Notes under the pieces: generated by a model
What the model was told of the DNA's origin: nothing
Databases searched by the model: none
The model's input: the letters and a program-made list of their open reading frames with translations, nothing else
Made by a program: the position numbers and the translations under genes
In this document: positions 53,895-60,430 of the stretch, one piece after another
Numbering within the stretch: the stretch's first letter is position 1
How the letters are laid out: the number at the start of each line of letters is the position of its first letter
Origin: Lepidodermella squamata
Lineage: Eukaryota; Animalia; Gastrotricha
DNA length: 64,000 nt
Reading direction: 5' to 3'
NCBI GenBank assembly: GCA_047495785.1
Contig: JBLDXI010000024.1
Location: 1,984,001-2,048,000 of the forward strand

Positions 53895-55131
53895 TGGTTT
53901 TTCATTTTTGAGTAACAAAACTATAAACTGTTAACTATTAAACTATAAACTATATAAACTATAAACCTGAAAAACGGACGAAACCTAATGGACTGGCATA
54001 AGTCTCCGTCCTATTGCCTTTTATTTTTGTACTCCTAAAGCACTGAAAGTAACAGAAAAAAGTCCTCATATCATAGGATTCTGCTTACAATATTTTGAGC
54101 GTTTGCAAAATGCACAGAAATAAGAATAAGAAATAAAAAAGGCTCACCACCAAGCGTCACAGGAACACACCACTTGCAGCAGCGATTACGCAATGCAAAT
54201 AATTAGTGCGCCGCATGAAGGGACAAGTGGGCGCACGCGCGCGCGATGTGCGACCTGAATAAATGAATGCGACACGAAACTCAACCAAAGTGCTACAGAT
54301 TTTTGAAAAGGTGAAACACTAATCCCACGATTTGAAACACGCAATTATAACTGGGGTCCATGTAAGTACCCAGTTTCTTGTGGGACGTAGCCCAAAGATA
54401 GTTAGCAACCTCTCCACGTTATCCATTTTCACGTGAAACGTTTGAATTTTAAAATAATAATAAAAACTGCCTTTAATCAAATTCAGCCGAAAATTGCACT
54501 GAAAATTCGGCTGCGAATGCGGCCTGGCCTGGTACGGGATCTAAAAATTCTCTTCAAGGGCCTCCTAGTTAGACAATGGAATAGGCTGTATGAAGTCTGT
54601 ATGAAATAATATTGACTTCTACTCGTTGCATTTTGAGATTTCTGGGAATAAATCGCTGCGTTGCGCTCTTGTTAATTCGTGTTGCACTTTGGTTGAAATA
54701 TGATGCGCGTGCGACGCTTATTTATTTTCTGCTGCACTTCGGTATTTTGTGTGGCGCTGTGGTTTTCAGCGATAAACATTTTTTTAAGGTGGATCGTAAA
54801 TTTTCGCGAATTTCGTAATTATTGCCTCCTCCTGCATAAAGTATCAAGTATTTGATTTGTTTGTTTTGTGTTACAGCAAAAATTCAAGATCTGCATTTCT
54901 CCCCCACCTATGATCTATGATAAATTTAGATGCGTTTTACGGATATTGAGATAATTCAATCTATGATACTATTTTTGCAATTGATTAAATCCGTTTCCAA
55001 CGCAATAAAAATGTTGAGCAAATAAGTTTTATTGCAAACAAGACAGTATAGCTAAAACTCGCATGATGTGCCAACATTTCGTCGTTTTGTCAATCTCTAT
55101 GCAGATTTGCGATTCTTGAAGGAATCAAAAT

Positions 55132-55755
55132 ATGGATTGGCTGCTAGTGTTGGCAGTAATCACATGCACGTTGAACAGCGCCACGGGTTGGCCTGAGGGT
55201 GTTACCTCTCTGGACGAAGCTTTGGATGTCATGTACGTAGATGGTAATCATTTTGTTTGGTTTTTAAATGGCACGACCAACATGTTCGTTCCATCGAAAA
55301 ATTCTTTCCTCGAGTCGTCAATCACGCAGAATTCGATGAGTGCATCAACAGGTCCGTTTTCGAAAAACCCGCCAGGCACAACAACAGTGAACAGTGGTTC
55401 AGCATTGGGCAGATACAGCCTTGGGGTTTCGATTCAAAAATTCACCTTGACATTTTACGCGAAGCTCACGTGCTCTCAAGACACGGGTATCTTCACCCTA
55501 GAGAACATGCTATCACTGAGGTGTGTAAACTTAGATGGCGTAAGGATTTCCGACACGGTAGAAACTTGTGTAAAAGATAAGTCATGCACTTTCGGAAGAA
55601 GTTTCGATAATGATAAGAAATACTTTTATACTTTCCCTTATCTGAACATTAAAAATGGCGTGGTGAAAATAAACAGTAGCATCTCGAGCTCAGTATTCAT
55701 CTTCGGTCGTTGTGCCCAAGTCATCATTACATTTTCGTCCACTAAGTGGAATTAA
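55132..55755 (+). CDS. Secreted protein of unknown function (possibly ConA/LamG-like beta domain)
   Basis: Signal MDWLLVLAVITCTLNSATG; 207-aa ORF; FTLTFYAK weakly resembles a LamG/pentraxin strand. Confidence 0.55.
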   Translation: MDWLLVLAVITCTLNSATGWPEGVTSLDEALDVMYVDGNHFVWFLNGTTNMFVPSKNSFLESSITQNSMSASTGPFSKNPPGTTTVNSGSALGRYSLGVSIQKFTLTFYAKLTCSQDTGIFTLENMLSLRCVNLDGVRISDTVETCVKDKSCTFGRSFDNDKKYFYTFPYLNIKNGVVKINSSISSSVFIFGRCAQVIITFSSTKWN

Positions 55756-55781
55756 GAGTATTTCTTGTTTTTTTTCGCAAT

Positions 55782-56514
55782 ATGCCAGTTCCAGTGGAAG
55801 AGTGTCCGCGCGGTATTTGCAGAGGACAATGTCTCCTGCAGGTCGTCAAAAAAGCTCATGGATTGGCAAAGAGTCTAATTATGGCAGAAAAACAGTTTGC
55901 TATAGATCTGAACGGACTTCTGGCGAACGTCGAAAAAACTCACAAAAATGTGGGAGTAGCGCAAGCGGTTGGAGGGATAACTGCTGCTGCAGGTGTAGGA
56001 GCGGTAGTTTTTACTGGTCCAGTTGGCGCTGCCATTGCTGGTATTGGTCTAGCAATAGCTGGCGGTGGTGTTTCCGTGGGAGCTATAATTACAGAACATT
56101 TCATACAAAAAGATTTGATGAAGAAATGCAATCAGTACCTGGAGAAATATAAGGCTGATAGGGAGACCTTGAAGGAACTAATTGAAGAGATTTTGAAGTC
56201 ATTCGTCCCACCAACCGTGAACGCCGAGGAAGCTCAAAATATTGCGCGAAATATTGCACTTGGGTTGGTGGGAGGTGCAAGAATCGCACAATTTGCCCGA
56301 TTCGGAACTGATGCTGCTGCAATCGGACTGCGGGCTGTTGGTGCGGTTGTAGGCCCTCTTGGTATAGCTCTTGACATGATTATGGTTGTCCGTAAGCTGC
56401 TCAAGAGTGCACCTAACGCTGATGTCATTAGAGATGCAATCACGCAACAAGAGAAAGTTGTGGAAACATATGAGGAGCTCTTGAAGACACTTGTGGACTA
56501 TGAAACAATATCAG
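55782..56514 (+). CDS. Apolipoprotein L-like domain (predicted exon 1 of an ApoL-IRG fusion; unspliced ORF ends at 56573)
   Basis: KTHKNVGVAQAVGG-[Gly/Ala hydrophobic hairpin with FTG]-VSVGAIITE and C-terminal GIALDMIMVV...ADVIR..ITQQE resemble ApoL motifs; ATG at 55782. Confidence 0.65.
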
Positions 56515-56827
56515 GTAGAAAATATTATTTCGATTTTAGCATAGAAGTTGTACGTCGTACGTCGTTGAGTTAAGCAGACCATTTCTTGGCGGACCAATTG
56601 CCCGTTATTCCTTAACCGATGACGTTATCGAAGTGCGCCACACTGTTGCCACGTGTAACAAGGTGTGGCGCATCGTTTGAGATCAATCTTGACCGCATAT
56701 TCAATCGCGCTCTAGGCGCCCGTTATGCGCGCGCACTTGCATGCCCGTATTGATACTCATTAGCGTATGCACACAGCTTTTTGAATGCGCAAAATAGGAA
56801 GGTAGAAGGAAAACGCGCTCATTTTAC

Positions 56828-56983
56828 CAGGGCTGCAAAACCTGCGAAATTTCCCGCGCACTTTCTCAAAATTTCCCACTAATTTTGACCCATTTCAGCA
56901 AATTTTCCTGCAGTTTACTGTAATTTTTCAAAAATTATCCGCCGCGCACCAGTTGCGCCATTTTCGCATGTTTTGCAGCCCTG
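56828..56983. mobile_element. hAT-type MITE
   Basis: TIR CAGGGCTGCAAAAC / GTTTTGCAGCCCTG; 8-bp TSD cattttac / tattttac (7/8 match). Confidence 0.8.
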
Positions 56984-57297
56984 TATTTTACTTGCAACGA
57001 ACGAGTTTCGCAAGAACACTTATCAATTCGCAATACCCTTCTCCCTTTTCTCCTCCTTTACTTACTTGTCGCTTACTTCTTCTTCTCGCCCCGATCCTTC
57101 CTGTAACATTATATGTACCAGGATACAGAACTATTTGCAGCTGCTGATGAACTTGGGGAATCTTAGTAGTTCATCAGATGGCAGTTATCAGGGGGAATCG
57201 GCTAGTCATATGGCACACCTCCAATCTAGCTCGGAACACTGGTCCGCGGAACTCAACGACGTGGAAGTTGTTCTGATTATTTTATTTGGAAACACAG

Positions 57298-57950
57298 AAA
57301 ACATCCACAAATTCGGATATAACCCAGCCTGCTATAACATTGCGTTTGTCGGCAAACAGGATGCAGGAAAGTCAAGTCTTGTCAATTCATTGCGCCATCT
57401 CAGCAAAAAAGATTTGAATGCTGCGCCCGTAGGTGTAGGAGAAATGCACGTGGATGCGAAAGGCTTTCCGTACGTGGACTTCAATGCAACTAATTCTGTG
57501 CAAGTCAAAATTAGGGGGAGAGACGCCGTGTTATGGGATTTTCCTGGGGGAGGTACTGATAGGCACGACTGGGCTACATACTGGAAAGATTGTTTTCTAA
57601 CTGAGTTCGACTTAATTGTTCTAATTTTTACTGGAGCCGTGCCTGATCAAAATTACTTGGACCTCGCTAAACTTCTCATCTTGACGTATAATAAACCAAT
57701 CCTCTTCGTCAGAAGCAAAATTGACCGAGACATCCAAGACATTATGGAAGATGACAACATCGAGTTCGGGGACGCGCTTAAAGCTGAACTGAACCAAATA
57801 AGAGAAGACACACGGCGTAGCTTAGCGAATGCTGGAATAACCAACCCCCAGTTATTCTTAATCAGTGCCAGAACAATTTTAAATGCAGCTGGTCGGTATC
57901 CAATGGATGAAGAAAGCTTCATCCGAATCCTGAAAGCTGGTGGTAATTAA
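57298..57950 (+). CDS. Immunity-related GTPase (IRG / IIGP1-like, GKS type) G domain; predicted exon 2 of the ApoL-IRG fusion
   Basis: NIAFVGKQDAGKSSLVNSLR (G1), AAPVGVGE (switch I), LWDFPG (G3), FVRSKID (G4), FLISA (G5). The upstream 108 aa of the ORF start inside a MITE and look non-coding; acceptor cacag| at 57297. Confidence 0.82.
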
Positions 57951-58046
57951 ACTGCGACGTGCGAAAGGCTGTACTTATTCAGCTAAATAGTTACCAACAT
58001 TTTTTGATTATTGTTTGATTGCATTTGCTTCAAAGCCGATTAGATA

Positions 58047-58243
58047 TTAATAATGGTCATGGCTATGTGAACACAGGATTGTGTATCGGCCAATGGCTAT
58101 GCGTACACATTGTGTGTGCGTGATTGGCTACTTGAACACAGCGCGCGCTTAAATTTGGCTGTGTGTCACGCAATGTGTGTAGGTACGCATAGCCAATGCG
58201 CGATACACTTTTCCTGTGTTGACATAGCCACATCCATTAATAA
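58047..58243. mobile_element. Short imperfect palindromic MITE
   Basis: tggctatgtgaacacagga ... tcctgtgttgacatagcca, with inner tggctatgcgtac / gtacgcatagcca. Boundaries approximate. Confidence 0.65.
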
Positions 58244-58357
58244 TTGCTCCTCCCCGTGTGGGAATCTTTATCTATTGAGATAGATGTATTGCTTGATTTC
58301 ATTTAATGGCATTTGATGACAATAAAATGTTGTAAATATCTGAATTTTATGATTTAG

Positions 58358-58549
58358 TGTAAGTTCGTACCGGAAAATTCATATCGCGGTCATTTCGTAT
58401 TTCGTACCAATACAAATTCATATCGTTATTCTAATCCTCGCATTGCTTTGGGTATGAAAAAATCACTAAAAATTTTAGGAAAAGATCACCACTTTTGGTA
58501 CGAAATGACAGCGGTACGAAATTGCGGGTACGAAGTTACACGTTACCAA
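58358..58549. mobile_element. MITE-like element with inverted ttcgtacc / ggtacgaa subterminal repeats
   Basis: Several ttcgtacc motifs on the left and ggtacgaa motifs on the right. Boundaries approximate. Confidence 0.5.
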
Positions 58550-59218
58550 TTTGATTATCTATTTAAATAATATTAAATGAAAAATATAACAATCGATTTA
58601 GCTAGTTATAACATTGTGGAACCACTGGTAAGTTGAACCTTGGCGCGCACGCTGATTGGTCAATTTATCGTAGCTAATGACTCCGGAATGAAACATTTCC
58701 GTCGTGCGATCCACTAATAAATTATTTTATATTTATGAAAAAATGACCTTGCCACACCCTCTGCCCGGTTTCCATTGACCACGAGCGTAAACTCCATATT
58801 AATTGTGGTAAATTGCTGCGGCAAAAACACTTGTTGCAAAAACTTTTATGGATCGCACGACAGAACGTTTCATCCGGGAGTCATAGCAACGATCGATTGA
58901 CCAATCAGCGTGCGCATTGGATTGGACTTGTAAGTGGTCACACAATGAACCTGACAGGCATAGAGAATATTTATTTATTTGTTGTCGCAAGTGCACTTTC
59001 ATGCGTATGCAATTAGCCAGCCAGGCGCCTCACTGAGGATAAAAGTATTTCTCTAGGTTACAGTCAACATTAAGATATTGTTTAAAAACATTTAAAGAGG
59101 CAGAAACGACGTCAGCAGGTAGTTTGTTCCAATAATTAATTGTTCTTCTGTTAAAAAAATATTTTTTGCAATCGCGTTTACACTTAGGAGGTCTTAGCCG
59201 GTGTTTGCTAGCGTAATT

Positions 59219-60430
59219 TTATTTAGAAAATTCATAGAAGTCGTCAAAAGTGACATCATAGAAGTGGTGATATAGCTTATAAATTAATTTCAAATCATTT
59301 TTAAAGCGACGCTTTTCCAAGGAGTCCATTCCACTACGTTTCAATAAACATTCATACGTAATATGGGAGTAGCGAGGTATATTAAAGGCTCTTTTGAGAA
59401 AATTAAATTGTAATTTTTCTAGTGATTCTATGACAGTTAGCAAGTATGGCGAATATACGGATGAACAGTAATCGATTATAGGAAGGACATACACACGGTA
59501 GGCTTCAAGTCTGAAGGAAGTACCGTATTTCTCGAAAATATACGACACACCTGTATATATCCCCGCTCCCTAATACAACCCGACGAAAAGATCGTTTGTT
59601 CATATTTAACCCAGGCCTCGAAATTGTACCACAGCTATTTTAATTTGGGCGAAGCATGCGTTGGAACAAAAGAAAAGCCTTATTAATGACGCATTATCGT
59701 AATCAGTGATTAGCTATCGCGTAAGCAGCTTCGCAACGTCTGATCTTGGCACCATTCATAAGCCAGCAGAAAATGCCCATTCAGCATTCACTAGCTGAGA
59801 CACAGAGTTTTATTTTAACATTTTCATATCCTTCTTAATCGTTTTAACCTTCTGGAATCGATGATGGCTGGCTCTCCTGATCGTCTTCAAGATTCCGTCC
59901 AGGTGTCCGAAGAAGACAAGCGAAAGCGGCACCGCAAGTATTCCCTCGCATTTTCACTGAATCGACAAATAAAACAATCTAAAAACGTCGTCTTAATACG
60001 AATTGCTCGCGGCTTTTTGTGATGATTCGCAATTAAACAGCACACCCGTATATATCCCCACTCCCTAATACAACCCGAATCAAAAATCATTTGTTCATAA
60101 ATATAGCCCGCGGTAAATTTTCGAGAAATACGGTATTAGCAAAGGCTCTACAAATCAATCCACTTAGTCTAAGACATTTTGTTTTAAGGTTATCGCAGTG
60201 AATTCTGAAGTCAAATTTTTTGTCCACAATTATACCTAAATCACGAGTAAAGTCAACAACGTCAATCGCTTGCGTACCGATACGACAGTTAAAATCGAAT
60301 TTACAGTTTAAACGTAAAACACAGCATTTAGACGAGTTAATAGAGAGACCATGTTGTTCAAACCACCTACAAATGTTATTTTTAGACGAGTTAATAGAGA
60401 GACCATGTTGTTCAAACCACCTACAAATAG
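59219..60430 (-). mobile_element. Non-LTR retrotransposon (CR1/L2-like) 3' RT fragment, interrupted
   Basis: WFEQHGLSINSSKC, RDLGIIVDKKFDF.IH, YVLPIIDYCSSVYSPY, LEKLQ..FLKR, SLEKRR..DL..YK; includes a 54-nt tandem duplication at 60327-60428. Confidence 0.82.
59523..60133. mobile_element. Non-autonomous Tc1/mariner-superfamily (Tc2-like CCGTA termini) element inserted in the LINE
   Basis: TA|CCGTATTTCTCGAAAAT ... ATTTTCGAGAAATACGG|TA. Removing it restores the LINE frame (CRAFANTSFRLEAY). Confidence 0.85.

Follow-up and report, generated by a model that had tools for sequence, protein, structure and literature searches.

A gastrotrich gene joining a divergent ApoL domain to an IRG-type G domain, and its possible role as a GTP-gated membrane effector

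In vertebrates the apolipoprotein L (ApoL) and immunity-related GTPase (IRG) defence modules are separate proteins. A 64,000-nt stretch of the genome of the gastrotrich Lepidodermella squamata (GCA_047495785.1, contig JBLDXI010000024.1, positions 1,984,001 to 2,048,000 of the forward strand) raises the question of whether the two can also be carried by a single chain. Within this stretch, called the window here and supplying the position numbers used below unless a contig is named, an ApoL-like open reading frame (ORF) that starts at 55782 is followed on the same strand by an IRG-like G domain that ends at 57950. An earlier reading, made from the letters alone (the sequence-only reading), proposed that the two are exons of one gene and that their product is a GTP-regulated membrane effector. 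The evidence leaves little doubt that a real, expressed two-exon gene lies here, encoding one 461-residue ApoL-IRG protein with the architecture described below. This architecture combined with a role as a GTP-gated defence effector is the best explanation of the locus overall, and judged as one joint claim it is moderately likely to hold.

The coding sequence begins with an ATG at 55782. Because an in-frame TAA at 55743-55745 lies upstream and within the transcript contig described below, this ATG is fixed as the start and the 461-codon frame is 5'-complete. Without splicing, the ORF of exon 1 reads through to a stop at 56571-56573. A phase-1 donor (TCA G/GTAGAA, or CAG/GTAGAA, at 56514/56515) can however be paired with a polypyrimidine-rich phase-1 acceptor (...aaacacag/AA at 57297/57298), and the joined frame of 733 + 653 nt (1386 nt) comprises 461 codons and the TAA stop at 57948-57950, with no internal stop. 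Donor, acceptor and frame are all found in the sequence as the sequence-only reading had placed them. The encoded protein has neither a signal peptide nor an MG start.

Two public sequencing runs contain this stretch, X1 (2015, 118 million letters) and X2 (2024), and both were aligned to positions 54300-59300. Run X1 holds one 1786-nt Logan contig that covers 55714-56511 and 57295-58282 with 0 mismatches to the window, its parts before and after the joint measuring 798 and 988 nt. The contig skips 783 nt with GT..AG ends, and a 3-nt ambiguity of placement allows the cut at 56514^57298, exactly where the junction had been predicted. The sole transcript-like contig therefore uses that junction; the contrary case, in which transcripts would end past the stop at 56573 and the G domain would take another first exon, is not what it displays. 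Both exons have a depth of 35.7 in X1, as opposed to 0-3 in the flanks and in unique intron sequence. As DNA, a 118-Mb run on a 121-Mb genome would give a depth of about 1, and thus X1, with its exons at 35.7, behaves as RNA. In the DNA-like run X2, by contrast, the contigs are unspliced (55485-56676 and 56880-58081), have no mismatch and show no joint at 56514^57298.

The alternative to a spliced transcript is an artefact, whether two separate genes, a contig made chimaeric during assembly or a processed DNA copy. Its appeal lies in the RNA label of X1, which is a guess, the RNA status being argued from the depth pattern, and in the form of the splice support, which is one transcript contig from one sample, an assembled Logan contig rather than raw reads. 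Yet the joint falls at a canonical, phase-compatible GT..AG pair that had been predicted beforehand from sequence, the contig extends far to both sides of it without a mismatch, and the DNA-like run lacks it. In addition, each exon occurs at a single place in the 121-Mb assembly (151 contigs) that was searched, which removes a processed copy elsewhere as a source of the joint, and exon 2 lacks its own start, the ORF upstream of it being transposon sequence throughout. An artefact of any of these kinds is considered very improbable.

The intron itself is informative about the age of the junction. Its body is formed by nested transposons: the outer element (56559-57262) contains a second, inner repeat, and the innermost insertion is a miniature inverted-repeat transposable element (MITE). 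The flanks of the MITE, cattttac and tattttac, form an 8-bp duplication with 7/8 positions identical, which by its sequence is compatible with the hAT superfamily. The ancestral intron was about 80 nt long and was later enlarged by the three nested insertions; for comparison, the predicted introns of the GBP-ApoL genes found in the same genome (see below) are about 55 nt long. Because the three insertions followed upon this ancestral intron, the junction is not recent and predates them. The ORF that contains exon 2 spans 56973-57950, and its earliest possible start, a TTG, lies inside the right terminal inverted repeat (TIR) of the MITE. Since the sequence ahead of exon 2 in this ORF is transposon, the TTG is spurious and leaves the G-domain exon without a genuine start, in agreement with the proposal that the ORF begins in a MITE without a credible start. 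As a separate observation, the inverted repeats near the two intron ends (56559-56581 and 57240-57262; 23 nt, 87% complementary) are the ends of a dispersed element of about 400 bp. Such repeats could draw the splice sites together in the pre-mRNA.

The two halves of the protein were analysed separately. Residues ~255-461, encoded by exon 2, form a complete and catalytically equipped G domain of IRG type and GKS kind, which is IRG-like but not a full IRG. The Pfam model IIGP (PF05049) matches it at 6.7e-21 over profile positions 36-201 of 375, and MMR_HSR1 matches at 1.7e-6. Sequence matches in the PDB are to IRGs only (Irga6, Irgb6, Irgb10 and GM4951), with Irga6 (1TQ4) at 4.6e-14 by phmmer, and identity to IRGs is only 27-30%. 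An AlphaFold2 (AF2) model of exon 2 has a predicted local distance difference test score (pLDDT) of 83.6 and a predicted template modelling score (pTM) of 0.85; in a fold search of the PDB with this model, IRGs take the first 38 places (E 2e-13, TMq ~0.7), and Rho comes next at 7e-8. The IRG identity proposed from the letters alone is thus borne out by both the profile match and the predicted structure.

The nucleotide-binding motifs G1, G3, G4 and G5 are intact, and the P-loop is of the GKS type (GKQDAGKS, residues 263-270) as the sequence-only reading had stated. Its description of switch I is likewise upheld by the phmmer alignment to Irga6 1TQ4, in which E106 is kept as E while T102 is replaced by V and T108 by H. 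In Irga6, T102 and T108 are phosphorylated by Toxoplasma ROP18. Relative to 1TQ4, there is an extra insert of about 12 residues past switch I. The N- and C-terminal helical domains, which flank the G domain in proteins of Irga6 architecture (about 400-420 residues), are both missing, as seen from the limits of the Pfam match and from the position of the protein end; the ApoL domain stands in place of the N-terminal part. The earlier claim of an IRG that lacks its C-terminal helical region is therefore right in substance, although the protein ends 25 residues after G5 and not about 20. Either the G domain lost the helical domains of IRGs or it never had them.

When the G domain is modelled as a homodimer with GTP, the interface score ipSAE is 0.35 compared to 0.02 for the best control; among solved structures, 21 of 30 homodimers and none of 23 monomers reach that mark. 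At least 67% of the contacts are common between runs, and the pLDDT of the partner is at least 82. The modelled interface involves, in exon-2 numbering, residues 20-21 of the P-loop, 35-36 and 44 of switch I and 143 of G4. This face may correspond to the head-to-head face of Irga6, and the model may be reproducing the solved Irga6 dimers (5FPH).

Transitive and profile evidence indicates that exon 1 is a divergent ApoL domain (residues ~30-243). An exhaustive phmmer search with exon 1 against 1.84 billion cluster representatives gave 27 weak matches, the best at 1.9e-7 and none below 1e-10. Among the 26 matches that were scanned, 23 carry PF05461, with a best value of 2.7e-38. Alignment by hhalign of exon 1 to 16 of these ApoL proteins gave 99.4% (E 1.8e-21) over 207 columns, including the signature stretch, with a profile that was made from matches to the query itself and is thus not fully independent. 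A language-model feature search scored exon 1 at 0.96 to ApoL clusters, and ApoL was the sole Pfam family in 42 of 100 hits. Hydropathy places the cores of the two hydrophobic regions at residues 66-99 and 186-198, and the AF2 model of exon 1 is all-helical, with helices at 177-208 and 213-243 and low confidence in the hairpins. The exon has no counterpart of the N-terminal helices of vertebrate APOLs, and its C-terminal helix leads straight into β1 of the G domain. The one Pfam match that exon 1 does give is sub-threshold and links the Gly-rich hairpin (55968-56150, residues 63-123) to the pore domain of TcdA/TcdB (E 0.015; 14 bits, where 27 are required); it is probably compositional and was not relied on.

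Table 1. Features of the ApoL-IRG gene, in window coordinates (UTR, untranslated region; TIR, terminal inverted repeat; a dot marks a feature given no strand).
Feature	Position	Strand	Description	Basis
5' UTR	55714..55781	+	To limit of transcript contig	Sequence, contig from run X1
Coding exon 1	55782..56514	+	Residues 1-244 and first base of codon 245; ends at phase-1 donor CAG/GTAGAA	
Divergent ApoL domain (by profile)	55869..56495	+	Residues 30-238, 207 columns aligned to ApoL-protein profile	
First hydrophobic helical hairpin	55950..56105	+	Gly/Ala-rich, ~residues 57-108; ApoL signature AGxGxAxAGG...GAxIT	Hydropathy, consensus alignment
Second hydrophobic helical region	56304..56405	+	~Residues 175-208; followed by amphipathic C-terminal helix 213-243	
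Intron	56515..57297	+	783 nt, GT..AG; 44 nt unique, nested transposons, 35 nt unique	
Outer transposon-like repeat	56559..57262	.	23-nt TIRs (87% complementary); at least 25 dispersed copies	
Innermost MITE	56828..56983	.	156 bp; 22-nt TIRs (95% complementary); at least 40 genome copies	
Coding exon 2	57298..57950	+	Last two bases of codon 245, residues 246-461, stop; IRG-type G domain	
G1 / P-loop	57351..57374	+	GKQDAGKS, residues 263-270; GKS type (GX4GKS)	Irga6 alignment
Switch-I glutamate	57441..57443	+	E293 = Irga6 E106; V289 and H295 in place of T102 and T108	
G3 motif	57537..57548	+	DFPG, residues 325-328	
G4 motif	57714..57725	+	SKID, residues 384-387; Irga6 counterpart TKVD	
G5 motif	57864..57872	+	SAR, residues 434-436; protein ends 25 residues further	
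3' UTR	57951..58282	+	To limit of transcript contig; last ~240 nt are high-copy repeat	

Several further observations join the guessed label of X1 and its single contig in weighing against this account of the gene and its function. The Pfam ApoL model (PF05461, gathering score 25.9 bits) does not match exon 1 even at E values up to 1, and a scan of the genome with this model found six other loci but not that of exon 1. The ApoL identity given by the sequence-only reading is sustained through its phmmer relatives and the hhalign comparison, while a direct match to the Pfam model failed to appear. The AF2 model of exon 1 is poor overall (pLDDT 61.6), and an ESM Atlas shape search with it reached a template modelling (TM) score of at most 0.43, to unrelated helical proteins, and was uninformative. 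With regard to function, the action of ApoL domains may be to remodel or anchor membranes and not to kill. No orthologue or paralogue of the fusion was found in the exhaustive search of the 1.84 billion cluster representatives or in the genome search. Finally, in a tree of G domains the fusion forms a long branch of 1.8 changes per site, which may belong either with the canonical IRG clade or with the short IRG-like family of the same genome.

These last points, namely a single copy with no orthologue found and a G domain on a long branch, would suit a neutral or decaying chimaera, produced by exon shuffling and transcribed and spliced with no selected function; so would an intron that transposons have invaded three times and a transcript known from one contig. 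A frame of 461 codons has nevertheless stayed intact, and the G motifs and the ApoL signature have been preserved despite great divergence from every relative, which implies long persistence. Moreover, the intron is cleanly removed at good depth in spite of the insertions, and the G domain is predicted by AF2 to fold with confidence. A chimaera of this sort is decidedly unlikely.

Searches beyond this locus were directed at the combination of the two domains. None of the 26 scanned ApoL-type matches of exon 1 carries IIGP, no IRG exon lies downstream of the ApoL gene in the genomic sequence around two of its nearest foreign relatives, and Atlas feature searches listed no cluster that joins ApoL with IIGP or GBP. 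A word-index search with the IRG half returned only two vertebrate IRGs, at 29-30% identity. The corresponding searches with exon 1 and with exon 3 of the GBP-ApoL gene were blank, probably because of low-complexity words, and are uninformative about relatives. A full-text search covering part of the literature yielded no paper in which ApoL is fused to an IRG or to any other GTPase, which accords with the statement in the sequence-only reading that no described example was known. Both modules are of known kinds and their pairing is apparently undescribed, but the limited protein searches do not establish its absence elsewhere.

The remainder of the genome offers relatives of each half. The search of the assembly found 31 distant relatives of the G domain, all at no more than 38% identity. 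Most are single-exon genes encoding about 290 residues, with an N-terminal Lys/Glu-rich coiled coil followed by an IIGP G domain (3e-22 in L003) and with no IRG helical domains; they are clustered on contigs C10 (2.10-2.19 Mb) and C48 (0.30-0.32 Mb) (L002-L007, L010-L012). Like the G domain of the fusion, members of this family have a short C-terminal end. The genome also encodes a canonical full-length IRG on contig C21 (706,992-708,287; L008:1300-2595), a 432-residue frame with an IIGP match of 8.8e-74 over profile positions 5-305, which groups with vertebrate IRGs in a small tree. The sequence of exon 1 itself has no other match in the genome, while an ApoL profile search found about ten ApoL-like loci.

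Among these loci are three tandem genes on contig C32 (2,378,000-2,390,000; L014-L016) in which a G domain of the GBP (guanylate-binding protein) type is followed by a Pfam-positive ApoL exon. In the first of them (L014) the exons lie at 133-723, 780-1002 and 1058-2277, and the match to PF02263 is split between two exons, with profile positions 3-156 in one and 159-228 in the next. Phase-compatible GT..AG joins, predicted from the genomic sequence, give a 678-residue open frame that reads GBP and then ApoL, and run X1 contains 0.65 of the words sampled from this locus. The occurrence in one genome of a second GTPase-ApoL fusion, built from a different GTPase family, suggests that the coupling is functional and not accidental. 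Other ApoL-like loci, recognised by profile, lie at C61:135,972-141,445, C24:1,668,913-1,669,470, C74:952,037-952,651, C7:1,908,399-1,908,923 and C32:441,159-441,683. At four of them no GTPase exon was seen in the surrounding 9-10 kb, a check that did not extend to the C32:441k locus or to the second C61 locus (~140.9-141.4 kb).

What such a protein might do can be proposed by analogy. It could be a cytosolic ApoL membrane effector, gated by GTP and acting in defence, a proposal for which belief and doubt are evenly balanced. The pairing of Irga6 G domains head to head is GTP-dependent and requires E106, and APOL proteins insert a hydrophobic hairpin into membranes and have channel or detergent-like activity. 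In the fusion, the G domain would act as a nucleotide switch, as in Irga6; binding of GTP would lead to head-to-head pairing and oligomerisation, and pairing would cluster or release the ApoL hairpins, which could then insert into a target membrane and permeabilise or remodel it. The ApoL domain would thereby substitute for the membrane binding that vertebrate IRGs achieve with their helical domains and myristoyl group. Candidate targets are the pathogen vacuole or a microbial membrane, and the likely setting would be cell-autonomous defence. In human cells, intracellular bacteria are attacked by GBP1 and APOL3 jointly (Gaudet et al. 2021, Science 373:eabf8113, as cited in PMC13702560 and PMC13177371). 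Functional coupling of the GTPase and ApoL modules is plausible because of this human cooperation and because of the GBP-ApoL trio in the same genome.

A different role is conceivable for the same architecture. The protein may be a membrane-anchored GTPase that serves the membrane dynamics of the host itself, in which the ApoL hairpins are an anchor only, like the transmembrane hairpin of atlastin or mitofusin, and pairing of the G domains tethers, fuses or divides organelle membranes, with no part in defence. Two hydrophobic hairpins beside a G domain that is modelled as a head-to-head pair would fit this role, and recent reviews (PMC13177371) see control of membrane fission and fusion as the basic activity of APOLs. 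The location of the gene is in keeping with it as well, for it sits alone among glycosyltransferase- and sulfotransferase-like ORFs, outside any immune cluster. On the other hand, both domain families are known chiefly from the control of pathogens. Furthermore, housekeeping membrane GTPases are conserved across animals, whereas here both halves are highly divergent and no orthologue is detectable among the 1.84 billion representatives. A purely domestic membrane role is for these reasons unlikely, and the GTP-gated defence effector is preferred.

On either side of the gene the sequence has features of its own. Upstream, an ORF at 55132-55755 (+), whose end is 27 nt from the ATG of the fusion, encodes 207 residues that begin like a signal peptide and match no Pfam family; its depth in X1 is 0-2; part of it is present in X2 at 3-5 times single-copy depth, with mismatches, and it may belong to a repeat family. 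This ORF was considered as a first exon of the gene and rejected, being in another frame, with an in-frame stop before the ATG and a transcript contig that starts at 55714. Downstream, the segments 57974-58307 and 58475-58975 are very high-copy repeats with many joints and strand switches. In X2, where single-copy sequence has a depth of about 35, the end of the 3' UTR is covered about 2,300-3,000 times and 58642-58975 up to about 40,000 times. Since the end of the 3' UTR falls within such a high-copy repeat, the true 3' end of the transcript is not fixed.

With this finding, defence proteins of the IRG and ApoL types reach an animal from a group which, according to established knowledge, is without a known interferon system. 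In mammals the route by which a marked membrane passes from immune GTPases to membrane breakers is still debated, and the cooperation of GBP1 with APOL3 was discovered recently. A natural single chain would offer a compact test system, in which GTPase state and membrane damage are measurable in one recombinant protein. Tentatively, the ApoL-IRG and GBP-ApoL genes may be viewed as 'Rosetta-stone' fusions, in which case ApoL membrane disruptors would be old and direct partners of immune GTPases of both the IRG and the GBP kind, and a GTPase-gated ApoL attack would be older than interferon and would later have been split in vertebrates (GBP1, APOL3); this historical reading is possible but doubtful.

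Comparison with known systems begins with the IRGs, since, in sequence and fold alike, the G domain has its best matches, and its only close ones, in mouse Irga6 (IIGP1), Irgb6, Irgb10 and GM4951. With Irga6-type IRGs the fusion has in common the GX4GKS P-loop, the glutamate equivalent to E106 and a G4 motif of the form (S/T)KxD; its modelled pairing may also be head to head on the nucleotide face, like that of 5FPH. It differs from them in the lack of N- and C-terminal helical domains and of an MG myristoylation start, in the insert of ~12 residues after switch I, in having V and H at the T102 and T108 positions and in an identity of 27-30%.

The ApoL half has its nearest relatives in sequence space in the PF05461 family. 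Like human APOL3 and APOL1 it is a predicted helical domain with a Gly/Ala-rich hairpin, a second hydrophobic region and an amphipathic C-terminal helix, and like intracellular APOL3 it has no signal peptide. Unlike human APOLs, it is without the first ~65 profile positions, corresponding to the N-terminal helices, and without a Pfam ApoL match; its C-terminus runs on into a GTPase, and its activity is a predicted one.

Atlastin and mitofusin resemble the fusion in possible working only, each having a G domain that pairs through its nucleotide face and is tied to hydrophobic hairpins. In sequence they are unrelated to it, its parts follow the opposite order, and no helical bundle lies between its G domain and the hairpins. 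In human GBP1 with APOL3, a defence GTPase and an ApoL membrane disruptor meet on a common target. Those are two separate, interferon-induced proteins with a GBP GTPase, whereas the fusion is one chain with an IRG-type GTPase, and to our knowledge no interferon system is known in the animal group of its host.

The comparison nearest at hand is with the GBP-ApoL genes of the same genome. Their order is reversed, with the GTPase N-terminal and the ApoL domain C-terminal, and their large G domain is of the GBP/atlastin type (PF02263). Their ApoL domain passes the Pfam threshold, in contrast to exon 1, to which it is 25% identical over 73 residues by BLASTP (E 0.001), and they form three tandem copies (with predicted splicing) as opposed to the single copy of the ApoL-IRG gene. 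Like the ApoL-IRG gene, each encodes a single chain of immune-type GTPase and ApoL, with short, phase-compatible introns.

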